A stretch of 64,000 nucleotides of DNA, from the NCBI GenBank assembly GCA_025594325.1, contig JANHCV010000006.1, positions 1,116,001-1,180,000 of the forward strand, in the 5' to 3' direction. The DNA is from Blastocladiella emersonii ATCC 22665. Its lineage: Eukaryota > Fungi > Blastocladiomycota. Shown piece by piece: positions 37,567-54,298 of this stretch. How positions within the stretch are numbered: position 1 is the stretch's first letter; every line of letters starts with the position of its first letter. Position numbers and translations under genes: made by a program. Under the pieces are notes generated by a model, which was not told the DNA's origin, searched no databases, and saw nothing but the letters and a program-made list of their open reading frames with translations.

Positions 37567-40462
37567 TTAATCTTGAATGATATTTACATCCAGCAGGACA
37601 ATCACGGTGAGCTCAAACCACCCACTTTCACCCGAGCCAGTTGTTGAAGACTGCTGCGTGATCTCGACACGCCCACCCGCGCGCTGCACCATCTTGACGA
37701 GTGCCGCGTACGTGAGACTGACGTTACCGAACTCAGACCCGCGCGACCCGAGAGTCAGGTTGAGACCGTCGTTGAGCTGTTGAAGTGCGGATGCTGACGA
37801 GCTTGCACGACTGAGACTGACAGAGAGCTTGAACTCGGCCAAAGTCGTTGAGGAACGTCGCGAGGCTTCTGCCGTTGCAGGGGATGCCATCGTCGCCGCG
37901 ATCCGACACTGCGCCTGCGGCTCGGCGAGCTTGACTGCAACCTCGACGGCCTTGGTCACGATGGCTGCGAGCGCACTGGGCGAAGCCGCAGGAACCGGGC
38001 GCGAGCCAAGGGCGGCGAGATCGACGGCCACGTCCAGCGCTCGGGCGTTGATCTTGCTCCGCCGCAGCTCGAGCGCGCTCTCGATGACGCGGCCCACAAA
38101 CTCGGCCAGAGTTCCACTGCCGACCTCTACACGGTCAACGGGACACGGCATCTCGACGCCCGAGTACCCGGCCACGTCGTTGAGCGTGTCGACGACGTGC
38201 CACGCGGCCTCGCACGCATCGTCGAGCTCGCCACGAGCCGCGTCCTTGGCATTTGCTGAATTGAGGTCGACGACCATGTCCTGCGCGTCCTCGTACACGC
38301 TGCCGACGACGAGCTGGAGCAGCCGACGGCGTGCGCGGGCCGACTCGGCCGCGGAACGCTGGAGGCCGGCAGCTTTGCGCATGTGCTCGACACGCTCCGA
38401 AATATCGTGGAACAGGACCACCTGGGCGAGTCGGCGGCGCAGTGGGATCTCGGGCTGCGCGGCGCCGGGCGGTGGAGTGGTGGCAGTGGTCATGGTCCGC
38501 TCGGTGCTGTCCTCGACGGCGCTGACTGAGAGCTGGATCGCGAGCGTGGAACCGTCACGGCGCAGGACGAGGCCGTCGTGCGTACCCGACACGAGCGTAG
38601 AAGGGCTTCGAAAAGAAGTGGCTGCGGCAGAAAGGTGTGGGCTAGACGCTGTGGAGGTTGATCCAGCGAGCGAATGCTGAGAGCGGCGACCGCGCAGCGT
38701 CGAGACCGAGGAGCGAAGGCTAGAGCCAGATGAGGCCGTAGCCTCGACGCCGTCCTCATCGAAAGTCGCAGAGAAATGCTCGTTCGGCTCGGCAGTGTTG
38801 ATGGGCTGCACGCTGAGCACGGCGGAAACGTGAACACGGTCGAGCTGGCCCATGGAGTAGCCGGCCATCTCAAGCGCGGCGTCGTTGGCGCCCATGATAA
38901 GCCCGTCGCTGTCAAGTAAGACCATCCCGTCGGGGATGGCCTGCGTGATGGCCTTCGAGTAGTCGCGCAGCGTGTCGAGCAGCCGCTCCTGCGCGCGCAC
39001 GCGGCGAAGCGTCTGCTGCGACGCGACCACTCGCTTGAGCCCGCGGCGGGCCAGCTCGGCGGCCACGATGGACACCGCGGTCACGATCGCGAAGAGCACC
39101 CACGGCCACACGGTGCCGTACTGGTGGCGGTAGGCCTTGGTCGGGATGCACTCGACGCGCCACGGATCGAGGCCCTTGACGACGAACGGCAGCACGTACG
39201 TCTCGTGCGTCGCGAGCGACTCGGGCGTGAGCGTCGAGTTGTTGGCACCAGCTCTCGTACTGGCCGGGTCGTAGATAAATACGGGCTCGGGGTAGCCTGG
39301 ATAGTGCATGCGTAGGGCAAAGGCGTTGCGCTTCAGGTCGTCGTTGGCGCGAAATGCGCTGAGCAGCGTGTTGGTAAACAAGTCGTGGAGGTTGAGACCG
39401 ACCGAGACGACCCAGCGCGTGAAGGGCGTCAAAGGTGTTGGATCGCGAGGGGCGACGTTCATGTACAAGCTGACGCCGAGCTTGTGGTTATCGAGGAACA
39501 GCATAGGCGTGCTCGACGTCCAGTGGTTGGAGTTGATGGTGTCGAGGATCGGCTTGCGGCGGAGATCGTCGGTCAGCAGGCTCCAGCCGACACCGCGACT
39601 TGTACTACCGTCGCCGGCCCACCTGGAGCGCGATGGGAAACGACTCGTGAGCTCAGGTCGTCTCGACACGTGCAATCAATCACGTACAGGTAGACGCCGA
39701 CACACATGATCGTGTCGTTCTCGGCGAGGTTATCCGGGTTCGACCAAATCGTCAAGTTGTACCATCGCTCGAGCTCGCCGGCCTGGGCCTTGTCAATCAC
39801 CGCGGCGAGCATCATGCGGTAGAAGAGGTTGCGGTCGAATGAAGAGCGCGTGCCGTACTGGCCAAGACGCTCTACAAAAGCGTGCAGGATAGTGTCAGTC
39901 GTTACTCGAACTGGTGAGCAGTCCAGCGCGCTCGTACCCAAAGAGAGGTCACTCGTGGCATGCGCAAACGAGGCGAGATTGGTGAGGTACTGGATCGAGC
40001 GCACGGCGAACACGGTCTCCAATGAGCGAACGCTGACCTGGCAAGTGTTGGTGAAGTCGCGCAAGAAGGTCTTCCGCTCGATGGAGCGGAACCACAGGCT
40101 CAATCCGAGAGCAGCCGCTGCATACGCGGCGCGATGCGAGGTCAGCGTGGAGTACGCGTTGCTGACTAGCGTCACGCAAAGGTACCGAGGCCGATCAGCA
40201 GTACGAGGGACATGCCGACGGCGGGCAGCGTATGCGGCGAGCGGGCGGAGCGGCGGCCGAGGCGACCAAGCCATGCGATCGGGCGACCGCGGTACCGGCG
40301 CCAGTTGAAAGGGCCCGAGGTCACGGTATCGTGAAGCGACGGTCGGCCGGCATCGCTGGTCGCAAGTTCACCAGGCGCGTCCGAATGTGCGAGGGTCCAC
40401 AGGTCGAGGCCAGTGAGTGGTGCGCGGTTCTCCTCACCAGCTGAACGGTTCGTCGTTGACAT
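37567..40462 (-). CDS. TM-CHASE-TM-PAS receptor with a degenerate HisKA/HATPase module and no receiver; exons 40462-40186, 40117-39706, 39622-37567 (~914 aa)
   Basis: TM1 VGMSLVLLIGLAAALGLSLWF; CHASE-like GWSLLTDDLRRKPILDTINS...LYMNV; TM2 WPWVLFAIVTAVSIVAAELA; PAS AIPDGMVLLDSDGLIMGANDAALEMAGY...RRDGSTLAIQLSVS...FHDISER; HATPase-like tail MVQRAGGRVEI...G.G..F. Introns 40118-40185 and 39623-39705. Confidence 0.8.
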
Positions 40463-41224
40463 GAATGGGTGAATGCATCAAGCGCCGAAGCAATCAAGCG
40501 CGCGGAACAAGCATTAGATGGCAGTGCTCGCGAGAAATCGGGTGCGGCGGGACGGGCACGGCGGCTGGCGCACCGCGTCGCTCATCGGCAGCGGCCCACA
40601 TGACTGCGGAGTCCGCACAAGGGCGATCAAGCGAGAGCTCTGCTCTCTCCGCACCAACCACGGCGAGCTTGACGTTCACATGGAAACACCAAGTAACTTG
40701 CTGAAACTATGAGCTCGAGGGAAGGTCTGCTGCCGGCATGGCTCGCTGAGCAAGGCGAGCCGGTCGACGGTACCCGGCTTGGCCTCGCGCGCGACCACGC
40801 TTCTACCCATCGCCACCGCATCGAACGGATCCCGACGCGACGGCGTGTTGAGCAGGCCGCCTTGTCTGGAACCGGTGCTATGCAGGCTGAGCAACACACA
40901 TTAGTTTCATGAATGGGCTGAAAAGCCGCACCCATTGGCAGGTTGACTGATTAGCATCGCGTGAGAGAGTGGCAGAGAACGCGCTGGTCATGAATCTGCG
41001 GACTAGCAACTAGCCGCGCCGCTCGAGATTGGGTCGCTGAGACCTCGCGGCACGTCGCCGTCTCGCGGACCGCTGCCTGGGCTCTCACTCCGGGTCTTCC
41101 CTCCGCGACCTGACTTCGGAGCTCAGTGTTGGACGTGAAGCTCATCTCCGCCGACTCGTGTGATTCATGATATAAACAATCGCATGCATTCATGACACAA
41201 AAATTCGGCAATCAACGCGGGAGG

Positions 41225-42560
41225 TTACATGCCGACGATCGGGATCGCCGTCTGGCGCAGACTCGCGCCCGCGTCCTGCGTCATACCGTCCGCCGACGTG
41301 TGCATCTTGCCGCCGCCGCCGCCGGCGGCAAACTCGGCGTCGGTGAGCTTGGGCAGGACGGCGACCGGGTACGCGTGCGTGAGGCCGTCGCGATGGCCCT
41401 TGTTGACCTCGACACGCAGCTCGAGCGTGAGCGTGCCCGCCATGGCGCCGCGCGGCTCGACCGAGCACCAGTTGCGCCGCCCCATGAGCGCACGCTGGTC
41501 GGACGGCAGCTTGTGCGTCGGCTCGCTCGCGTCCACGTCGAACGGCGCGAGCATCGCCTCGGTCAGCAAGTCGCCCGACTCCCCCGAAACGGCGAGCGGC
41601 TTGGCGACGGCATGCAGCGCGCGGATCACGATACCCGGCGGAGGGATGTTGCCGATCGCCGACGAGATGATCTGCGTCATGTGCGCCGGGTGCGTGAGCC
41701 ACTGGTCCGCGGGCACCGACGACGGGAAGATGTGGCCCGCGCCGCCGCAGTGCACGTCGCCCGAGACGAGCGTGATGCGTAGGTTGCCGCGCTCGCGCGC
41801 GATGCGGCCGAGCATGTCGAGCGTGGCGTTGCGCTCGGCGACGTGGTTCGCCGACGTCCAGTGATCATTCAGATCGTCAAGCAGCTCGGGCTCGCCAAGC
41901 GAGTTGACGATCGTCTTGAACGCGCCCGACTTCTTGAGGTACGAGAACCACGGCATCTTGCCCGCGACGTGCCCGACGGCGTTGGCCGCGATGCCGGCGA
42001 CCGAGATGACCGACTCGGCGTGCAGGCGCGGGTACACCATGGGCACCGTGGCGCACACGAACAGGTGGCGCGTTGACGGCGCGAGCTGCGTGCGCAGGGC
42101 CTCCTCGATGAGCGTCCACGACCCGCCCGACACGAGCGTGTCGACGGACCGCTCGGTGCGCGTGTCGATGAGCAGCGCCGCGTTGTGCGGGCCCATCTGA
42201 CGGACCGCCGAGTGGCCGCCACGGTCGACGCCCAAATACCCGTCGGCGGTGCGGGCGCGCGCGAGCGTCGTGTGGTGCTGGAACAGCAGGTAGAAGCGCT
42301 GCGCGGCAATGAACAGGCCGCGGAACACGGGCGACGCCTGCAGGTAGCCCGGGTACGACCCGAACCCGTCAAAAATGTCGTGGTCGTCCCAGACGAACAT
42401 GGACGGGATCGAGGCGAGCGCATCCGCAAACCCGTCCTTGGCGAAATAGTGGAGGTACTGCGCGAAATAGAAGCCGTGGGCGGCGTCGTTCATGGCGCGC
42501 GTGAGCGGCGCCGTCGCCTTGGCGTCCTTGTGCTTGAGCGCGATTCCACGCGCTGGCAGT
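41225..42560 (-). CDS. PhoD-like alkaline phosphatase D family protein (fungal PhoD_2 type); N-terminal part not found, possibly a 5'-truncated pseudogene
   Basis: IPSMFVWDDHDIFDGFGSY, LLIDTRTER, LDDLNDHW, LVSGDVH and QIISSAIGN match PhoD metal-binding segments; the frame has a stop just upstream of ~42580. Confidence 0.8.
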
Positions 42561-43103
42561 TCAAGACCATGGGAGAGTTTCGCCGTCTACGCATGTCGTT
42601 TTGTCCAAAGAACTTGCCAAAAGCCGGTAGCATGCTACGGCAGGACGGCGGCGGCAGCGGAGAGTGGTGTTCTGGGACCTGTCGGGAAGGACGCGTTGCG
42701 CCACTCACGTGTTGTGAACCTCCAAGCATGCGAACGCCAGCCACATCACGTTTCAAATCACACTTCCTTTTTTCTTGCAGAGATCACCGTCAGGTGATGC
42801 CAAGTGAGCTGGAATGGAAGGGTGTATGCGCTTCCATGCTGTCAACCATGCGACCTCGAAGCCTTAACGCGGACCCCAAGTCGCTTCGCGCTCCAGTCCT
42901 CCCTCCCTTGAAGACAAACTCGCCCTACTCTGACACCAAACCGCAAGCTCGCTAGGCTTGCAAACTACTTCGAACAAGGACTTCACCAATAGCCCGTAGG
43001 TACGCGTCCTTCACGCTGCCGCGTTTGCTGCCCAGTCAGCTCGTATTCAGGTCCGCATCAGCTCACCCAATTGTACTTTCACCTTCTCCAGCAACTAAGC
43101 TGA

Positions 43104-44441: not shown

Positions 44442-46736
44442 CTACTCTTCAGCAATCAGGCTGAGCGCACGGTTCATGATCGCCTGGTGCACCTCCAGCT
44501 CGGTCAACTCCGGACGCTCGGTCTCCGTGGCCGAGGACTCCGACTCGCGGCGCAGGCCGTCAAGGAACGAGCCGTCTGCGCGGTTGATGGCTGCGATCGT
44601 CCAAACCATCATGTCGTCAATCGTTTGCACGCAACGACCGTTGCCATGCTTGTCAGTGTTGGGGACCAGCCAGTAGTCGCCCACCACGTCGCGCCTCCGA
44701 AGCACGCCCTTGATGCACTCCTTGGCGGCGGGCGGGAGGTTCGGCAAAACCGGTCCGTGGTTTGGGATGCCAGCGAAGCGGAGCAGAATATCGAGAGTCG
44801 AGCGCCACTCGACCTGTTGGACGAGGTTGCACTCGCCGCACGTCATACCGCCGTTCCCGTTCTCCTCGAGACCGGTTTTGAACACGTGGCGGCCAACACG
44901 GCCCTTGACCTGCGCCATGATCATGATGCCGAGGAACACGGGGCCAAGGCGACGATCGCAAATTTGCTTGACCAGGCCCCTGTCCAGATCCGGCGCGTTG
45001 ACCAGTGCAACGGGAAGCCACGCAAGTGCCTCGTACCCGTCCCAGTCGTAGCGTTCCTGGTCGCTCGGTGAGGCGGAAGTGTAAAGTTCAAGGAGGCGGC
45101 ACGCGCGCGTCACCATGGCCGGCAGAAAGTTGCTGCCGTCGCTGGGCTCGGTGAACATGGCGGCGAGACGGGCGCGGCGGCGAGCGGCGCGTCTCGGCTT
45201 CTCGCTCGCGACTACGACCTCGAGCATGTCGAGAAGCCCTTCGTTATCGCCGAGATGCCGCTGCGCAAACTCAAGTACGTCGCCCACATGGTCTTTCGAC
45301 TCGAGCGAGAAAAGGCCAAAGTCGCGCAGTACTACGAGATTGCGCACCGTCAGTGAACACGAATAGGGTAAGTACAAGAATTGCCGTGTACCGTCGATGA
45401 GCTTCGCGCCATTGTCTCGCCCAAGTCGCTCGACTGCGAGCTGAACGAGCGCGTTCGAGGCCGACGCTTCAGGGGCCAGGTTGAGAACGGCGAGCAAGAT
45501 CAGACCCCACGATTCCGTGTCCAAAAGTCCGTGGTCGTCGAGCACGCCAAGCGAAAGCAAGCCATCCCCTCGCTTGCACCAGTTAGCGATCAGGGTGGGA
45601 AGCTGAGCGCGGAACATGGCATCGTAATTGTTTGACGGCGAAGGCGTAGTATCCGGATCACCAGGCATCAAGTTCGGGAAGCGCTTGAGAACATGTGCAA
45701 AGACCTCGGGTGTCGACAGTTTGACCAGCCAGACCCACAGCGGGACGTCGCCGACCATACGCTTGTCCGAAGGCCAGGCGTGGTCCAGGATCCAGTCGAG
45801 GATTGGGATCACGTCACTCGCGGTCGGGCCAACCTCCTCGAGCTGGATAAATGCAATCAACATCGCGTCGTCGTTCTCGCAGAGCCCACGGAGCACATCA
45901 GTAAGAAGTACTTGATGGAGCGGGCTCCACAACATAAATTTAAAGGCGGGCCCGTTCCACGAGTAGAGCGAAGCGATCGCCATGAAGGTGGCAAAGTTGA
46001 GCGTCCATCCAACGTCGGGGGCCGCCTCAAGTGCTGGCAGCCACGGAAGGTCAAACATTTTGACCGTGGCAAACGCCCATGTCCCAAGCGGCGAGTAAAT
46101 GTACAAAAGCAAGCCCGCTTTGCAACACGTGTTCACAACAACGCGCTCCAGCATGTCACCGTCGCAGTAGCCCAAGGCGTAGATGTTTAGCTGGATGAGG
46201 GCATAGGCGGGCGCCGAGGTGAACAGCTTGATGTCTGCGCAATCGGGAGAAAACTCGTCGGTGACCAGCTTTTCGACACGAACAATGAGATCGCGATAGG
46301 GAAGGTTGAGCGAGCCGAGTCGACTGAGCGCGGGCTGCACCTCCTCGACGAGGCAGCTGATTGCGGTGTCGATGAGAGCATTGAGTCCAGGACGTTCGGG
46401 CAGCGCGACAAGTTTGTCGCCAGCGATATTTTCGAGCTCGAGGTAAGCACAGAGATTGGTGCGGACGTTTTGGAAGGCGTGGTCCATGTAAATCGCGCGG
46501 ACCGCGCCAGGCACCTTCAGCTCGCACAGGGTGTTGATCCAGGCGAGCTTGACGCGGCGGGAAGCCATGGCATCACAAAGCTCGCGGCTCGCCGTCACAA
46601 CGCGGTGGTGCGGCGCAACGAGCTGCAGGACCCGCTCGATGAGGCTCGACGGGAGCGCGGCCAGGCTGAGCGAGCTCGGGACATGCCCTGCCGTGTTTTG
46701 CGGCAACTCAGGAGCAGTTTCCATTCGATTCATCAT
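44442..46736 (-). CDS. Single-exon 764-aa hypothetical protein with an F-box-like N-terminus and a helical, Leu-rich body
   Basis: SLAALPSSLIERVLQLV resembles the F-box start; long ORF in a visibly more AT-rich segment. Confidence 0.6.
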   Translation of the reverse strand: MMNRMETAPELPQNTAGHVPSSLSLAALPSSLIERVLQLVAPHHRVVTASRELCDAMASRRVKLAWINTLCELKVPGAVRAIYMDHAFQNVRTNLCAYLELENIAGDKLVALPERPGLNALIDTAISCLVEEVQPALSRLGSLNLPYRDLIVRVEKLVTDEFSPDCADIKLFTSAPAYALIQLNIYALGYCDGDMLERVVVNTCCKAGLLLYIYSPLGTWAFATVKMFDLPWLPALEAAPDVGWTLNFATFMAIASLYSWNGPAFKFMLWSPLHQVLLTDVLRGLCENDDAMLIAFIQLEEVGPTASDVIPILDWILDHAWPSDKRMVGDVPLWVWLVKLSTPEVFAHVLKRFPNLMPGDPDTTPSPSNNYDAMFRAQLPTLIANWCKRGDGLLSLGVLDDHGLLDTESWGLILLAVLNLAPEASASNALVQLAVERLGRDNGAKLIDGTRQFLYLPYSCSLTVRNLVVLRDFGLFSLESKDHVGDVLEFAQRHLGDNEGLLDMLEVVVASEKPRRAARRRARLAAMFTEPSDGSNFLPAMVTRACRLLELYTSASPSDQERYDWDGYEALAWLPVALVNAPDLDRGLVKQICDRRLGPVFLGIMIMAQVKGRVGRHVFKTGLEENGNGGMTCGECNLVQQVEWRSTLDILLRFAGIPNHGPVLPNLPPAAKECIKGVLRRRDVVGDYWLVPNTDKHGNGRCVQTIDDMMVWTIAAINRADGSFLDGLRRESESSATETERPELTELEVHQAIMNRALSLIAEE

Positions 46737-47026: not shown

Positions 47027-49635
47027 TCAGGCCATGTCCATGTCCATGTCCATCTCCATGCCCAGCGCCGTTTCAGCACGACCGACGTCCGCGTACGCGT
47101 ACTGGGCGATGCTGTCGAGCGTGTTGGCGAGGCCGTTGGTGTCGGGGCCGCGCGCCGTCTCGTAGTCGCCGTTGCCGTCCGTGTCCTCGTACACGTAGTA
47201 CTGGCCGTCGTCGGGGTTGTGCACGACCACCGTGTCGAGCACACCGTCGCCGTTCGTGTCGAGCTCGCCCGACACCAGCTTGCCGTTGCTGTACACCGTG
47301 GCCGCGTCGGTGATGCCGTCGCCCGTCAGGTCGTAGTCCGCCTGCGTGCCGTCACGGGCAGTGTGGCGGACGATCAAGTTGGTGATGCCGTCGCCCTCGA
47401 AGTCGTACCGGTTGACGCGGTACCCGTCGTTCTCGTTGACGGTCATGATCTCCTCGGCGATCCCGTCCTCGTTCATGTCGACCGTGTGCGTGTCAATCCA
47501 GTTGGCGCGGTCCATGCGCGTGTCGATCAGGCCGTCGCCGTCGTTGTCGGCGCGGCTCTCGATGGTCTGGTTGTTGCGGACGGTCGCCGAAATGTCCATG
47601 ACGCCGTCGCCGTTCTGGTCGGCCTGGCGGACGACGGTGCCGTCGTCGAACTCGAACGTGCGGTTGTCGGTGCGGCCGTTAGCGCCAAACCTTTCGGTCA
47701 CGGTCACGCCCGCCGCGTCGTCGCGCGTGACGACCGTCTCGACGAACCCGTCGCCGTCAGTGTCGGTGCGCGTCACCTTGCTGGTGAACGAATCGAAGTG
47801 CAGGCGCTCCGTCTGCGACGACAGGCCCGCGAGCGCGTCGAAACGCGGGCCTGCCTCCGGCTCGACGCGGCCGACGTCCGTGTAGGCGTACTTGGCGAAG
47901 CCGTCGATCCGGCTGGCGAGGTCGTCCGCGGCGCCGCCGGGCCCGCGCGCCGTCTCGAAGGTGCCGTCGAGGTCCGTGTCGTCGAACTTGTAGTACTTGC
48001 CGTCCTCGGGGTTGAGCACGACGCTCGTGTCGAGCTTGCCGTCGCCGTCCGTGTCGAGCGTGCCCGCCACGAGCTTGCCGTCGCGGTACGTGGTCGTCAG
48101 GTCGGCGACGCCGCCGCCCGTAATGTCGTGCTGCGTGTAGGTGGCGCCGTCGGCGTAGCGGAACACGGTCGTGTTGATCTTGCCGTCGCCCTCGAAGTCG
48201 TACTTCTCGATGGTCACGCCGTCCTGCTCGTTGCGGGTCGACGTGAACTCGGCGATCCCGTCCTCGTTCATGTCGGTCGTGTTGGTCTCGATCCCGTTCG
48301 CGTCCGTCGACATGCGGTAGTCGATCTTGCCGTCCAGGTCGTTGTCAGCGCGCGCCTCGATCACCTTGCCATTGCGGTACGTCGCCGACACGTCCATGAC
48401 GCCGTCGCCGTTGTAGTCGGCCTGCGCGACGCGCGTGCCGTCGGCGAACTCGTACACGCGGTTGTCGACCTGCCCGCTGCGCCCAATCACGTCCGTGATG
48501 GTCACGCCCGACGTCGTGTCGCGGAACACAACCGTCTCGTTGACGCCGTTGCCGTCGCGGTCGAGCTCCGTCACGGTCGTCGTGCTAATGTTGAGCTGCA
48601 CGTTTGACGCCTGCGTCGACAGACCCTCCTCCTGGCCGAAAACAATGACGTTGGGACCGCCGGGTTGCGGGGCGGCGGTCGCGCTGGCCGAGGCCGCGGC
48701 ACTGCCGTCAGGCTGAGGGAAGCCAGGAGCAACGTTGGGCGGCTGCGGGAAGCCGGGGGCCACGACGGGGGCGGCGTCGCCGCCGTCAGGCTGCGGGAAG
48801 CCGGGCGAGATGGTCGGCGGCTGCGGGAAGCCGGGAGCGACGATGGGGGCGCCGCTGCCGCCGTCGGGGTGTGGGAGAAGGGGCGCGACATCGCCGCCAC
48901 CGCTCACCACGTCGACCACGTCGTCGGCGCAGTGCGCCGCAGCGTCTGACGAGAAGGCGGGCGTGTAGATGAGCTCGGTCTGCGTGGCCGCGACCGTCGC
49001 GTTGCCCGACGGATCGGCGAGCGCGGCGGCGTCCGACCAGGTGATGCCCGGGTTCTCGCCGAGCACCGAGACGAGCGCGGCGGTGAAGGTGCTGCCCGTC
49101 TCGCCCGACGTGGGCTGCCACGTGTTGCCCGACGCGATGCACACGACGCTGCCCGTGCCGTCGAGGCACGACAGGTCAATGTCGGCGGCCACGTCAGACG
49201 CGCTGGTGTCGATGGCCATGGTGAACTTGGCGCCCTCGGGCAGCGTTGCGAGGATGTCGCGGACCTCGGCCTCGGTCACGGCGCGGTCCGACGCCTCGAT
49301 GAAGTTGCCCTCGCCCGCGGCGCCCTTGCCGGAGAAGGAGAAGAGCAGATCGTCGCCGGGCTGCGCGTTGGCGACCATGTTGCGCAGCGCGCCCACAATG
49401 TCGTCGTGCGTGACGTGGTCCTTTATGTCGGTCAGCGTGGTGACCTCCTCGATGCCCATGCCGTGGGCCACCGTGGCCATGTTCTCGGCGTCCGTGGCAA
49501 AGCCTGCCGGGCGGGGATTCCAGTCAGCGAGCGTCCTTGTGAGGCCGTGCGGCGTGGGCGGGCGGGCGGCGTACCAGCGAGGACCTGGTTCGAACCGAAA
49601 TAGTTGATCCCGACGCAAAGCGCACTGGACGGCAT
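47027..49635 (-). CDS. Pseudo-metacaspase (C14 fold, catalytic dyad lost) + PGFPQP repeats + duplicated DxDxDG repeat array; exons 49635-49575 and 49503-47027 (~845 aa)
   Basis: MPSSALCVGINYFGSNQVLAG|FATDAENM, AQPGDDLLFSFSGKG, MAIDTSASD and GSTFTAALVSVL follow the metacaspase strand order. Intron 49504-49574 (GTACGC..GCTGAC..CAG). Confidence 0.85.
48710..48845 (-). repeat. Four coding copies of [AS]PGFPQP in the linker of the pseudo-metacaspase
   Basis: VAPGFPQPPTISPGFPQPDGGDAAPVVAPGFPQPPNVAPGFPQPDG. Confidence 0.9.
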
Positions 49636-50612
49636 CGTGGAGATCTTGGAGAGGTGTGTTGGTGGAGCGGAGGTCGGCAAGCGAGAGGAAGTCGACGGCG
49701 AGCTGCGCTGAGGGAGAGACCGAGGCCGCGGGAGCCGCCCGATCTTGTAGGAAGGGACGCCGGGCGGGCTCGCGTGCCATCAGTTTGCGCGCGCGCAACC
49801 GGCTATCGGCTTGCTTGGTCAGGAGGGCGCGGCGCCACACGCGCGCTCCAGAAATCTTGAAATCTGCCGTGGAAGCCTCTCGCCTTCCTTGTTCCGCTTG
49901 CGAGCTCGGTTCGCCGGCGCTGCGGAACGTCCCACGCGGTGCGGGAGACGCTGCTGCGGATGCGGTCGGCCCCTGCTCCGGACGAACGGAAGCACCCTCA
50001 ACCCGCAGCGCTCCGCTGCGTTGCTGCGCCGCAGCTGCACCGATCGACGGTCATGGCCAAGGGTGAACGCCGGCGTGATCGGGGTCGGGGAGGTGGCGAC
50101 TTTGCTCGCGCGCCGGCCACCACCAGCCCAGCTCAGCCCAGTCGAGTGTGCGGTGCAGCATGAGCGGGTGCGCCGTCCCTGCCGATGAAGATCTCGACTT
50201 GCTCGAATCTCCTCCACGCTATGATGAACGAGCAATGATCCGGCTATGATGGCCGCCATGCCGCAACACAAATCGTAACTTTTCATCGTCGCGTTCGAAG
50301 GCAGCGATACATACTGTGCGATGTGTCTATTCCTCGCACTCTCGCACTCACAAACCGCCTTGCGAGCGCCGGCCGCAAAGACGAAGTCGGCCGCCCCGCC
50401 CTGTCACTTCCATCACCACGCGTTGCGCCACACTGACCGCTGTTGCGTGCGTTAATGCGGCTCCTGATGGAACGGTTGCTCGACCTAGGTCGCACTGCAC
50501 GGCCAGCCGCGGCGAACCCGCTCGGACCCAACGAGCGAGCGGGCGGACACGACGAGGTTCGAAGGGGAAACATCTATTCAGACTCGATCAATCAATACAC
50601 TCGCTCGCCGGC

Positions 50613-53600
50613 TCACAGCTGCATCGTGAACTCGCCGGGCTGCGGGACCTGGAGGAGCTGTTCGAGCTCGGACGCGGACATCTGCTGCTGCTGCTGCTGC
50701 GGCCGCGGCGGACCCGGCTCGCCCGCGTCCTGCTGCTGCTGCTGCTGGCCGAACACCGCCGCCGCCGCCGCGCTGCCACCCGCGCCGACCATCGGCAGAC
50801 TAAAGTCGTTGGCTCCGGGCATCGCCATCATGGCCGAGATCGCCGCCGCGGCCGACGACGTCGACGCCGCCTGCTGCGGGAGCTGCTGCGGCGGTAGTGG
50901 TGGGGAGATACTCGTGCTCGCCGCACCCGCCGAGTGGTTGTGGCGACCGAGCGCGTTTTCGGGTGACCGGCTCGCCCCCGACCCCTGATGCTGCTGCTGC
51001 TGCTGCTGGATGAACTGCTGCGGCTGCGATCCCAGGGCCGGCGACGGCATGCCCATGGACATGGACATGGACGCGAGCACCTGGCTGGTCAGGGCCGGGG
51101 GCATTTGAAAACCCGACGACGAGGTGGGCTGCTGCGACTGCGACTGCGACAGGTGGGCGAGGCCGAGCGCGGATCCCGACGCGTCCGGGTTGCGCGAGAA
51201 CAGGTCGACCTGCGCCGCGAGCTCGGCGACCGTTGGCGCGCCGAACGTCGTGTTGAAGGCGGTCGGGAGCGACAGGCCCGCGAGCTGGAACGTGTCGCCG
51301 CCACCACCACCGCCGCCGGGCGTCGAGGTCACCGGCTGCTGCTGCGGCATGGTGTTGAACGGGGTGCCGCCGTGCTGCTGGTGATGCTGCGAGTGGTGCG
51401 AATGCGTATGCTGGTGTGGGTGGTCGAGGTACGACCCGTCGCGCTGCGACGGCACGACAACCGTGACGCTGGCGAGCGCGGCCGCCGCAGCAGCCTGGCG
51501 CTTCTGGGCGAGGATCCCGCGGAGCTGCTTGACGATCGCTTCGATACGCAGCAGGTCGTCGGCGACGATCCAGAAATCCCGCCGCACACGCAACAGCGCG
51601 TTCTCGAACCACGCAATCACGGTATCGAGCGCCGGGTACGCGGCCTCGATATTCCCACCCGCGGCCGCACCAGGTTCACGCGTCATAGCGGGACACGCGC
51701 ACACGGGTGCGGCGTCGATGTGGCCCTCGGTGACGAGCGACAGGGCGAACTCGGCGACGACGCGCAGGATCCACGACACGGGCGGCGCCGAGTGGACGGG
51801 CGCAACGGCCGTGACGACGCGCACCATGTGCCACCGCTCGCGCGGGCATGTCTCGATGTACATGGACGCGTTGAAGAAGACAAAGTTGCCGAACAGCCAC
51901 CAGCAGATGGCCTCGCGCGGCAGCCGCGAGATCAGCGCCGTCGTCCATGCGGGGTCCGGGTGGTCGATCGCGTGCCACCCGTGCGCTGCCGCGCGCCACG
52001 CGCGCGCCGCGCGGTGCAGCGAGCCCAGGCTGTCGCCCATGGACGACATGCCCTGCGCGGGGGTTGCCGTGACGCCCGCGATGCTCGGTGGCGGGGCACC
52101 CGGCCCAGCTCCACCCGCGGCAGCAGCGGCAGAGTCGGCGACCGAGGTCGCCGACGCGGTATCAGGTTCGGGTCGACCGAGCGGCTCGTCGGGGCGCGAC
52201 CGCGCGAGTCGCTGCTGTCGGCGCCACTCGTCGCGGATCCAGACCTCGATGCGGCACAGGAGCGTGATGGCGCCGAGGAACCCGGCGTGGAGGACGGACG
52301 TCTGGAGCGGTGCGCCAGGGATATCGGGGAACCGGGGCGCGGGCGGGAGCTGCTCGATGGCCTCGAGCGAGAGCTGCGGCGTGGCGCACACGGGCCCGGC
52401 CGTGTTGAGGACGGCGGCGAGGCGGTCAAGCGCGTACCCGGTCCAGAACAGGCGGCTCAAGATCTCGTCGGAGAAGGGCGCGGGCGGGGACAGGTGGCGG
52501 TTGTTGCTGTAGTCGCGGTTGGCGAGGCTGGTCAGGGCCTGCGCGGCCATGCTCATGCACATGTACCCCGCGGCCATGTGGTTGCGGAAGTAGTAGAACA
52601 TGGCGAGCAGCTCGAGCGCCATGCACTCGTGGATGCCCATGGCGACCGACGACGCGATCCGCGGCATGATCATGGCGTGCGCCCGCTCCGCCAGCTTGTC
52701 GGGGCGCGGCGCGAACAGCAGGTCCGTCTTGGACTTGCCCGAGCCCGCGCTCGCTGCGCTGGTCGCACTCGCTGGCGACGTCGGCTGCTGGTCGGCGCTG
52801 TTGCTGGAACCCGCGCCAGTGGCAGCGGCAGCAGACGGAGGTGCCGGGTGCGCCGGGTTGGGTAGCGGGCCGCCACCAGGGACCATGAGGTACAGCGACG
52901 TGACGGCGAACAGCGCGTAGAGCAGGTACGCGGGCACCTTGCCGGCAGCGAGATCGGCGCGAAACTCCTGCTCGGTGAAGACGGGAACGAGCGGGTAAAA
53001 GTGCGTGAAGAAGGTGGAGAGGTGGATGTCGAGGTGTGCCGCGGGCAGCGTGGCGAGATCCACGAGCTGCGCGGCCGCAGCCGTCTCGGCAGAGGGCCCA
53101 TCGGCGCGGACGTCCGGGTTGAGAATGTCCTGGCCGGGGAACTTGTACGGGCGCGGGGCGGGCCCGACACTCGCAATCGGCGGCGGCGGGGGCGGTGGTG
53201 GCGGAGGCGGCGGAGGCGAGGGTCGGCGGCCGACGTTGGTGAGACGGGCCTCGATGGCGACGCCCTGGTCCGTGTAGATGCGGTCGACCGAGTCGCCCGA
53301 CCCGCCGCTGCCGGGCGGCGCGTGGTACGGCGGCTGCTGCCACTGCTGCAGCTGCTGGAGGTGGTGCTGCGGCGGCTGGCGCGTGGCGGCAAACGAGACC
53401 GGCGAGTCGACGGGCGTCGGGACCATGCCCATGGCGCCGCCGAGCGCGGGGTCGCTCGCGGATCCGTCGTCATGCTGCGTGCGCGCGCGTTTGCGGGCGC
53501 CGGGCGGGGCGGCGGCGGACAGGCTGCCGTTGGCCAGTGGTGGGACCTGGACCGGGTGGTTGAGGATGGGCAGGGATCCACCGCCGCCGTTTCCGTTTCC

Positions 53601-54298
53601 GCCTGCGCCGGCGTAGTTCTGGAACGGATCGAGATGGGCACCGGGCGCCGACGACTGGGTCTCGAGGAGGTGCGGGATACTCGCGGCGTGCGGGTGGTGC
53701 TGGTGATTCTGGTGCTGCTGCGGGTAGAAGCCGTGACCGGCGGGATGCTGGAGCTGCGGATGGTGGTGCTGCGGCGGCGGACCAAAGAGCTGTTGCTGCT
53801 GCTGCTGCGTCAGGGCAGCAATGGCGTCGTAGTGGCTCGAGACGGACGGCGGCGTATGCTTGGCCTTGCCGGCCGGCCTCGCCGCGCGCGAGGCGGACGC
53901 CGGCGGGGCGCTGGGCTCGCCCGGGCGGCGTTTCGGCCCGCGCTTCTTCTCGACGCCGTACACGCAGTCCTCGCCGAAGCCAACGCAGCTACACGGTCAT
54001 CGTCGTGAGCCTGTGTTGCGATCGCGGGAGCGTCGGAGAGTTCAGCGTACCGCTCACAGGGTCGGTTCCCGTCGCAGCGCTTCTTGCGGCGCTGGCAGCC
54101 GAGGCACGCCTTGGCCATGCGGCTCTCGGACAGGTCGGCGTCGGTCGGCTGCTGCTGCAGCTGGATCGCGGCGGTGGCGGGCGAGTCGCCGCCTCCGCCG
54201 CCGCCAGTGCTCAGTGCGCCGGTCGACGACTGCGCCGAGACCGAGGCCGACGATGACGCATTGGTGTTGCTGCCGGTGGCAGCGTCGATTGAATCCAT
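50613..54298 (-). CDS. Zn(II)2Cys6 fungal transcription factor with middle homology region; exons 54298-54051 and 53988-50613 (~1207 aa)
   Basis: Spliced CLGCQRRKKRCDGNRPCER|CVGFGEDCVY; HLSTFFTHFYPLVPVFTEQEF, YLLYALFAV and RLFWTGYALDR (Fungal_trans-like); intron 53989-54050. Confidence 0.93.

Follow-up and report, generated by a model that had tools for sequence, protein, structure and literature searches.

A Metacaspase Homologue of Blastocladiella emersonii without the Catalytic Dyad, Fused to Two Arrays of Putative Calcium-Binding Hairpin Loops

Results and Discussion

The stretch of Blastocladiella emersonii ATCC 22665 DNA analysed here (64,000 nucleotides, positions 1,116,001 to 1,180,000 of contig JANHCV010000006.1; referred to as the window) carries on its minus strand, from 47027 to 49635, a pseudo-metacaspase gene of two exons, with 845 codons plus a stop codon. 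In its product, named P0001, a metacaspase domain with neither of the two catalytic residues is followed by a linker and two modules rich in Ca2+-type loops. P0001 is one of at least eight dyad-dead paralogs in a Blastocladiomycota-specific clade of mini-metacaspases without prodomain. The features of the gene, all on the minus strand, are as follows.

49575..49635, minus strand: exon 1, residues 1-20 and the first base of codon 21, with beta-strand 1 of the caspase fold
49504..49574, minus strand: spliceosomal intron, 71 nt, phase 1
48950..49503, minus strand: rest of the pseudo-metacaspase domain (to residue 205), p20 and a short p10-like part
49325..49327, minus strand: Lys80 codon at the catalytic His position, placed by alignments
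49202..49204, minus strand: Ser121 codon (AGC) at the catalytic Cys position, placed by alignments
48710..48835, minus strand: four PGFPQP motifs (residues 244-285) within the linker of residues 206-317
47849..48613, minus strand: module 1 (residues 318-572), from the AlphaFold2 (AF2) model, fold matches and motif count
47051..47815, minus strand: module 2 (residues 584-838), a duplicate of module 1, matching Pfam DUF6802
47027..47050, minus strand: acidic Met/Asp tail (EMDMDMDMA-type) and stop codon, from the spliced translation

Gene Model

The spliced 845-amino acid (aa) product was identical to the NCBI protein H9P43_005706 of B. emersonii ATCC 22665, and the DNA at the locus was 100% identical to JANHCV010000006.1 1153027-1175635. 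The gene starts with an ATG at 49635 and stops at 47027. Exon 2 is contained in a minus-strand open reading frame (ORF) at 47027-49840, and the conserved metacaspase start (..ALCVGINYFGSNQ) lies in a different frame from this ORF, at 49635-49585; an N-terminus like that of P0001, from residue 1, was found in many paralogs. The intron (GTACGC...CTGAC branch point...CAG) has a counterpart of 64 nt at the same codon position in P0002, the closest paralog, and P0001 is therefore considered a genuine fungal gene. The window is high-GC eukaryotic DNA. Bacterial contamination was rejected on account of the spliceosomal intron shared with the paralog, the 2-Mb fungal contig and the position of the C14 domain inside a fungal clade.

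The Pseudo-Metacaspase Domain

Against Pfam Peptidase_C14 (PF00656), with a gathering score of 21.4, the spliced P0001 obtained 33 bits and the part encoded by exon 2 alone 25.2 bits. The domain alone and the spliced protein matched C14, and no C14 match was obtained in Pfam with the unspliced ORF. The AF2 model of the domain (residues 1-205), calculated from a 52-sequence alignment, had a mean predicted local distance difference test score (pLDDT) of 90.0 and a predicted template modelling score (pTM) of 0.88. The best Foldseek matches of this model were all metacaspases, namely Yca1 4f6p (query template modelling score, TMq, 0.80), C. glabrata 7qp0, T. brucei MCA2 and Arabidopsis MC9, with the paracaspase MALT1 lower in the list, and the domain shows the caspase/haemoglobinase fold with p20 and a p10-like region.

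The His-Cys dyad of metacaspases is absent from P0001. In the HMMER alignment to Arabidopsis MC9, whose crystal sequence is a C147A/G mutant at the catalytic Cys, Lys80 falls on the H of SGHG and Ser121 on the catalytic-Cys position, and the same placement was given by hmmalign of 150 relatives, by a MAFFT alignment of 52 sequences and by profile alignments to Yca1 and T. brucei MCA2 (TbMCA2). An earlier note, made from the letters of this DNA, had proposed a metacaspase with Lys at the His position (codon 49327-49325) and Ser at the Cys position (codon 49204-49202). Both codons proved exact (Lys80 and Ser121, AGC), the HMMER score above the gathering threshold bears out the family assignment, and the loss of the dyad withstood the comparison of alignments. 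The same note had described the acidic loop that follows HG as missing and the protein as devoid of a prodomain, and these two features were also recovered. A deletion of about 13 residues of the loop sets P0001 and P0002 apart from every relative in the family alignment. In the AF2 model the first beta-strand begins at residue 4, Met1 being 3 residues ahead of it, and in-frame stops are found upstream. All members of the Blastocladiomycota clade begin like P0001, without the prodomain of type I enzymes, and the insert of about 55 residues between p20 and p10 of Yca1 is missing throughout this clade.

The S1 pocket of TbMCA2 consists of Cys92, Asp95, Ser156 and Asp211, and its Ca2+ site of Asp173, Asp189, Asp190 and Asp220 (PMC4357240). 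These residues were located in the PDB chain, which has a 20-residue tag offset, by calibration on Cys92, Asp95 and the C213A site. The pocket residues correspond, in the same order, to Phe22, Asp25, Ser78 and Asp119 of P0001, which keeps an acidic S1 pocket in Asp25, Ser78 and Asp119. The Ca2+-site residues correspond to Gly86, Glu98, Ala99 and Asp128, leaving one Asp and one Glu of the four-Asp allosteric site, and this canonical site is degraded in the closest paralog as well. From the retention of Asp25, Ser78 and Asp119 and the loss of the dyad and of Ca2+-site residues it follows that the Arg/Lys pocket has been retained, and that neither catalysis nor the canonical Ca2+ switch should survive; P0001 is presumably not a protease.

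Linker and Hairpin Modules

The domain is followed by a Pro/Ala/Gly-rich linker (residues 206-317) with four PGFPQP motifs, which P0002 does not have, and by two modules of 255 aa (residues 318-572 and 584-838) with a mutual identity of 55%. Each module contains eight 9-residue loops of the D-x-D-x-D-G-x-x-D type with a spacing of about 24 aa, 16 in all. Strict matches to D-x-[DN]-x-[DN]-G-x-x-[DE] numbered 12 in the C-terminal 540 aa, mostly 23-25 aa apart, against 0.23 expected and a maximum of 3 in 2000 shuffles; the four additional loops are degenerate.

The AF2 model of module 1 (pLDDT 87.4) consists of about 18 beta-strands in consecutive hairpins (about ten), and then a terminal helix. 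Its loops, at module positions 18-26, 66-74, 90-98, 114-122, 139-147, 163-171, 187-195 and 212-220, coincide exactly with the D-x-[DN]-x-[DN]-G-x-x-[DE] segments, and one edge of each predicted sheet bears the eight loops. Foldseek and VIA-align place the predicted module among the elongated single-layer beta-hairpin sheets of the MORN, TCP/G-box and OspA type, with VIA Z values of 11.9 for the CPAP TCP/G-box (4bxp), 11.6-11.7 for OspA variants, 11.0 for T. brucei MORN1, 10.5 for junctophilin-2 and 10.0 for the SAS-4 TCP domain with a proline-rich peptide (4by2). The sequence identity of the module to all of these was 9-12%. The C-terminal half is in line with the earlier description of PGFPQP repeats behind the protease fold (four copies, residues 244-285) and about 500 aa with many D-x-[DN]-x-D-G turns (12 strict matches versus 0.23 expected), and modelling of both halves, which the note had proposed, gave a metacaspase fold with pLDDT 90 and a module sheet with pLDDT 87.

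DUF6802 (PF20615) was the sole Pfam family above threshold for the array, with a slight margin: the cutoff is 27 bits, and scores of 31.2, 29.6 and 24 bits were obtained for the whole protein, module 2 and module 1, respectively. This family has no known function, and no literature on it was found. An FG-GAP beta-propeller was rejected, since the Pfam E values of 0.02-0.045 were below threshold and the model is an open single-layer sheet, and so was an EF-hand, for which Pfam matches were also below threshold and in which the loops would not be flanked by beta-strands as they are in the model. These sub-threshold matches are explained by the loop motif alone being shared. Pfam MORN gave no match at E <= 10 in P0001, the likeness to MORN being at the fold level only. 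A search of the PDB with the module sequence returned nothing significant (best E 0.22; lanmodulin and an EF-hand protein at E 0.35).

The loops follow the consensus of the Ca2+-binding hairpin loops found in integrin alpha subunits and in the wider DxDxDG class. Since this link rests on established knowledge, Ca2+ binding is deduced for P0001 from the motif, and the arrays would be expected to bind Ca2+. Alternatively, the D-rich loops could be structural turns and the array a constitutive MORN- or TCP-like sheet or spacer that binds protein or lipid and possibly docks the PGFPQP linker. It would agree with such a sheet that the best fold matches (CPAP/SAS-4 TCP, including the 4by2 complex with a proline-rich motif at Z 10, MORN1 and junctophilin) use no Ca2+ loops, and that the EF-hand and FG-GAP matches in Pfam all stayed below threshold. 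Twelve strict matches to the integrin alpha Ca2+ hairpin consensus, with 0.23 expected by chance, speak against it, as does the finding that the loops are the best-conserved part of the module, and we regard purely structural turns as unlikely. Docking of the PGFPQP linker on the sheet, in the manner of proline-rich motifs on TCP domains, is a speculative possibility.

The Dead Subclade and Its Relatives

An exhaustive HMMER search with the domain covered 1.84 billion representatives of a library clustered at 50% identity, for which reason all paralog counts are lower bounds. It gave 3398 matches, 20 of them at E <= 1e-30; of the latter, those looked up belonged to B. emersonii or Catenaria anguillulae, with the exception of one multi-domain Phlebia protein. 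In a maximum likelihood tree (LG+C20, 52 rows, dyad columns removed), a clade of 26 sequences with support 100/99, composed of Blastocladiella, Catenaria and two Dinochytrium (chytrid) proteins, was set apart from other metacaspases. P0001 belongs to a B. emersonii subclade of eight members (support 86/75), all eight lacking the dyad, whereas the sister subclade, also of eight members (support 98/95), keeps His-Cys in seven. The residues at the dyad positions of the dead subclade and the loops counted in the tails are listed below.

P0001: His site K, Cys site S; 12 strict loops
P0002: His site A, Cys site S; 8 loops
P0025: His site R, Cys site T; 3 loops
P0022: His site M, Cys site S; 3 loops
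P0036: His site Q, Cys site S; 3 loops
P0026: His site M, Cys site G; 1 loop
P0039: His site M, Cys site gap
P0062: His site A, Cys site gap; 4 loops

Several independent dyad losses were found in Catenaria, with a minimum of 6 state changes over the whole tree; Catenaria P0021, with an identity of 42% to P0001, carries Thr in place of the His and lacks the Cys. Two proteins of Dinochytrium kinnereticum, P0043 and P0048, encoded on the same 14-kb contig, have an intact dyad and lie inside the otherwise Blastocladiomycota clade, and the compact prodomain-less type may therefore predate Blastocladiomycota.

These substitutions bear on the possibility that P0001 is still a hydrolase, with Ser121 as nucleophile and Lys80 as general base. 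Ser-Lys dyads operate in signal peptidase, LexA and Lon. Lys and Ser stand exactly on both dyad positions of P0001, and either Ser or Thr occupies the Cys position of P0001, P0002, P0022, P0025 and P0036. Position 80, however, differs from one dead paralog to the next (K, A, M, R, Q, M), the closest paralog having Ala, and the loop after the His site is deleted. Moreover, no activity could be detected for T. brucei MCA4 (TbMCA4), whose nucleophile is Ser and whose His is intact (PMC3220528). Because position 80 varies among the paralogs, a working Ser-Lys dyad is judged very improbable.

Loops of the D-x-D-x-D-G-x-x-D type follow the domain in seven of the eight dead B. emersonii paralogs, and in the multi-loop tails their spacing is mostly 23-27 aa or a multiple thereof. 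The tails of P0025 and P0036 matched the hidden Markov model of the module with E values of 1e-5 and 4e-4, respectively. Among the 150 best matches, tails with two or more loops were absent from all eight proteins of the sister subclade, from Catenaria and from the other relatives. The dead subclade being a single lineage, the association of tail and dyad loss counts as one evolutionary event and not as eight.

Other features of the paralog termini were observed. The dead paralogs P0022, P0025, P0062 and P0039/P0169, encoded on other contigs, end in -CC or -CCC, possible lipidation sites of the palmitoylation or geranylgeranylation-like kind, and the active paralog P0035 begins with MG, a putative N-myristoylation signal; together they recall the lipid-anchored TbMCA3/MCA4 pair. 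The dyad-intact P0031, P0033 and P0035 have long low-complexity C-terminal tails rich in Gly, Tyr, Pro, Trp and Ala with tandem repeats, such as the units of about 17 aa (...GGHWAAGSAPSFGDYHG...) in P0033. Unlike the tails of the dead subclade, these may have prion- or condensate-like properties.

Relatives of the Module

Homologues of the module were sought with a profile built from three modules (two of P0001 and one of P0002). The search recovered P0003, a stand-alone module protein of B. emersonii (219 aa, H9P43_005742, E 1.7e-51), and beyond it unnamed metagenomic proteins only. The P0003 gene (L026 6001-6660, JANHCV010000006.1) is about 95 kb from that of P0001 and adjoins a ribosomal protein L6 gene, and its loops are partly degenerate (1 strict, 3 loose). 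The metagenomic kin P0004 (E 4e-21) and P0005 (E 2e-20) were named 'YwqK antitoxin' by JGI, and proteins of this type have 28-32% identity across 61-78% of the module. Some of the metagenomic kin carry a DUF6802 or DUF2007 domain, and several a hydrophobic N-terminal leader. P0004 is encoded on a bacterial contig of 49.6 kb, flanked by a TANGO2-family gene and by the housekeeping gene lgt; two more genes of the latter kind, cysS and gyrA, are close by. A genome scan with three bacterial sequences matched Thermodesulfobacteriota, Desulfobacteraceae, Acidobacteriota, Gordonia, Tenacibaculum and others. This type of hairpin repeat is widespread in bacteria. No eukaryote beyond B. emersonii was among the module matches in the word-indexed search of proteins of 140-446 aa, which does not establish absence. 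The family is a candidate for the capture of a bacterial repeat by a eukaryotic gene family.

History and Constraint of the P0001/P0002 Pair

P0002 has 475 aa and one module, and its gene lies in inverted orientation on the same contig, about 100 kb from that of P0001. Up to about column 165 of the alignment its module is more like module 1, and from there on more like module 2; the informative sites, 52 for module 1 and 32 for module 2, are spatially segregated, and modules 1 and 2 are more diverged from one another than either is from the P0002 module. The two-module state is therefore taken as ancestral, and P0002 looks like the result of a deletion by unequal crossover.

Constraint was estimated from P0001 and P0002 by the Nei-Gojobori method as non-synonymous (dN) and synonymous (dS) divergence. 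The GC content at third codon positions (GC3) was 0.93, so that dS is compressed and absolute dN/dS inflated; only relative differences among the following values were relied on.

Dead domain: dN 0.116, dS 0.361, dN/dS 0.32
Module comparisons: dN 0.24-0.38, dS 0.31-0.41, dN/dS 0.76-1.10

Within the modules dN was 0.10-0.19 for the loops versus 0.30-0.48 for the strand faces, which are clearly less conserved than the loops and the dead domain. These values are relevant to the view that P0001 is a drifting by-product of gene-family expansion without selected function. The module dN/dS near 1, the free variation of dyad positions among paralogs and the location of the gene inside a segmentally duplicated region are as drift would have them. 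It is harder to reconcile with drift that the ORF of 845 codons is intact, with a conserved intron position and a GC3 of 0.93, that dN/dS of the dead domain is 0.32, that loop residues are conserved over the three modules, P0003 and the bacterial kin, and that dead members persist in both Blastocladiella and Catenaria. Drift appears an improbable explanation.

As to the duplicated region, window positions 38646-42562 (L027 17074-20990) and L025 9579-13492 were 99.87% identical over 3.9 kb, and the P0001 and P0002 genes themselves 75-87% identical. The 99.87% segment comprises the 3' part of a PhoD_2 gene and a PAS-domain gene downstream of P0001; its counterpart lies downstream of P0002, inverted. 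The PhoD copy near P0001 has 443 aa versus 682 aa, and the identity ends at window position 42562. These features suggest either an inverted segmental duplication that was homogenised recently or a problem of the assembly.

Neighbouring Genes

Directly downstream of the P0001 gene is a 764-aa ORF on the minus strand (window 44442-46736), at which NCBI annotates a 279-aa product only (L027 13968-15194) and parts of which have weak DNA similarity (69-70%) in L025. The upstream neighbour, also on the minus strand (window 50613-53963), is a Gln/Pro/Ala-rich ORF of 1116 aa with long poly-Q tracts, which looks like a fungal transcription-factor-type protein.

Proposed Function

With a confidence somewhat above even, we propose that P0001 is a cytosolic, non-catalytic pseudo-metacaspase whose dead domain serves as a binder or decoy and whose loop arrays bind Ca2+, Ca2+ control residing in the tail. 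The dead domain, its acidic S1 pocket retained, would act as binder or decoy for substrates with basic residues or, alternatively, for the approximately 7-8 dyad-keeping paralogs, in the way of TbMCA4 and cFLIP in their respective systems. The loop arrays would take up many Ca2+ ions, which would stiffen or expose the elongated sheet and so create a Ca2+-dependent interaction surface, and Ca2+ control would thereby reside in the tail and no longer in the protease domain. P0001 would then bind or regulate its partners in dependence on Ca2+, and these partners may be the paralogs with an intact dyad.

Several observations weigh against this proposal. The dN/dS of 0.76-1.1 over whole modules could mean weak constraint, though dS is compressed at this GC3. 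For integrin-type loops, Ca2+ affinities are often in the micromolar to millimolar range, which is awkward for a cytosolic location. The dead paralog P0025 keeps all four Asp of the Ca2+ site, and the idea that Ca2+ sensing has moved to the tail therefore fails for the subfamily as a whole. Finally, metacaspases have been reported to be monomeric (PMC12914765), and a heterodimer of the cFLIP kind is therefore not a given. The transfer of Ca2+ sensing to the appended array, as put forward in the earlier note, thus agrees with the degraded site and Ca2+-type loops of P0001 and P0002 and does not extend to P0025. The structural premises of that interpretation hold, and what it missed was the family context, namely at least eight dead paralogs, the majority bearing a tail of this type.

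A wider scenario is possible but doubtful: in Blastocladiella, loss of the dyad together with capture of a bacterial-type Ca2+-loop repeat might have produced Ca2+-gated decoys or regulators of the active mini-metacaspase paralogs, a fungal counterpart of cFLIP or TbMCA4, that act at the Ca2+-dependent zoospore and sporulation transitions, the switch lying wholly in the tail in the two largest members.

The pseudo-metacaspases known so far are mostly trypanosomal, and the pseudo-orthocaspases bacterial. In B. emersonii, a free-living zoosporic fungus, a dead metacaspase subfamily stands beside a dyad-keeping sister subfamily, a natural system for asking what the metacaspase fold does without catalysis and a test case for whether an added module can take over Ca2+ control from the core. 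The compact prodomain-less metacaspases of Blastocladiomycota (about 215 aa) may in addition be handy minimal enzymes for structural work.

Comparison with Known Systems

The type I metacaspases (Yca1, C. glabrata MCA1 and T. brucei MCA2; C14B) have the same alpha/beta caspase-haemoglobinase fold as P0001, with p20 and a p10-like part (TMq of 0.75-0.80 in Foldseek; E 1.6e-63 for the family profile against Yca1), and the Asp/Ser/Asp of the S1 pocket is common to them and P0001. Unlike them, P0001 has Lys for His and Ser for Cys, no Pro/Gln-rich prodomain and a C-terminal extension of 640 aa; the acidic loop after HG is deleted, the insert of about 55 residues of Yca1 is absent and two of the four Ca2+-site Asp are lost.

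TbMCA4, which has Ser at the Cys site, is inactive yet biologically important, and interacts with and is processed by an active paralog (PMC3220528); the precedent of an inactive Cys to Ser metacaspase that the earlier note had invoked is thus confirmed by that report. T. brucei MCA4 and MCA1 are likewise eukaryotic metacaspase homologues with a substituted dyad. In contrast to P0001, MCA4 keeps its His, has a lipid membrane anchor and no repeat array, and belongs to an unrelated lineage, and in the B. emersonii subclade both dyad residues are lost in at least eight genes.

Bacterial pseudo-orthocaspases keep two pocket Asp, and particular C-terminal domains go with particular dyad substitutions (Klemencic et al. 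2019, PMC6426788). They share with P0001 the substituted dyad and the two pocket Asp, and differ in being prokaryotic and without p10, with Tyr-Ser as the commonest dyad and other partner domains. According to the same survey of 2019, pseudo-variants seem restricted to prokaryotic orthocaspases, the T. brucei case aside (PMC6426788).

As for the array, the bacterial 'YwqK-like'/DUF6802 proteins (such as P0004 and P0005) have the same repeat of about 24 aa with a 9-residue Asp/Gly loop; they are stand-alone proteins with a hydrophobic leader or a DUF2007 domain, none of them fused to C14. The TCP domains of CPAP/SAS-4, MORN and the central sheet of OspA are, like the module, elongated single-layer antiparallel hairpin sheets, but have no sequence similarity to it (9-12%) and no Ca2+-type loops at alternate turns. 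Integrin alpha FG-GAP has the same hairpin loop consensus of nine residues, D-x-[DN]-x-[DN]-G-x-x-[DE], in a beta-propeller, whereas the P0001 module is predicted to be an open sheet.

The fusion of a dead metacaspase to a DxDxDG array occurred in none of the 150 best metacaspase relatives outside B. emersonii, and no description of a fungal pseudo-metacaspase subfamily or of the array fusion was found in the literature searched, in keeping with the earlier remark that this architecture was not recognised from fungi. Pseudo-metacaspases and pseudo-orthocaspases as such are already known (PMC3220528, PMC6426788); the fungal subfamily and its fusion to DxDxDG hairpin arrays appear to be new.

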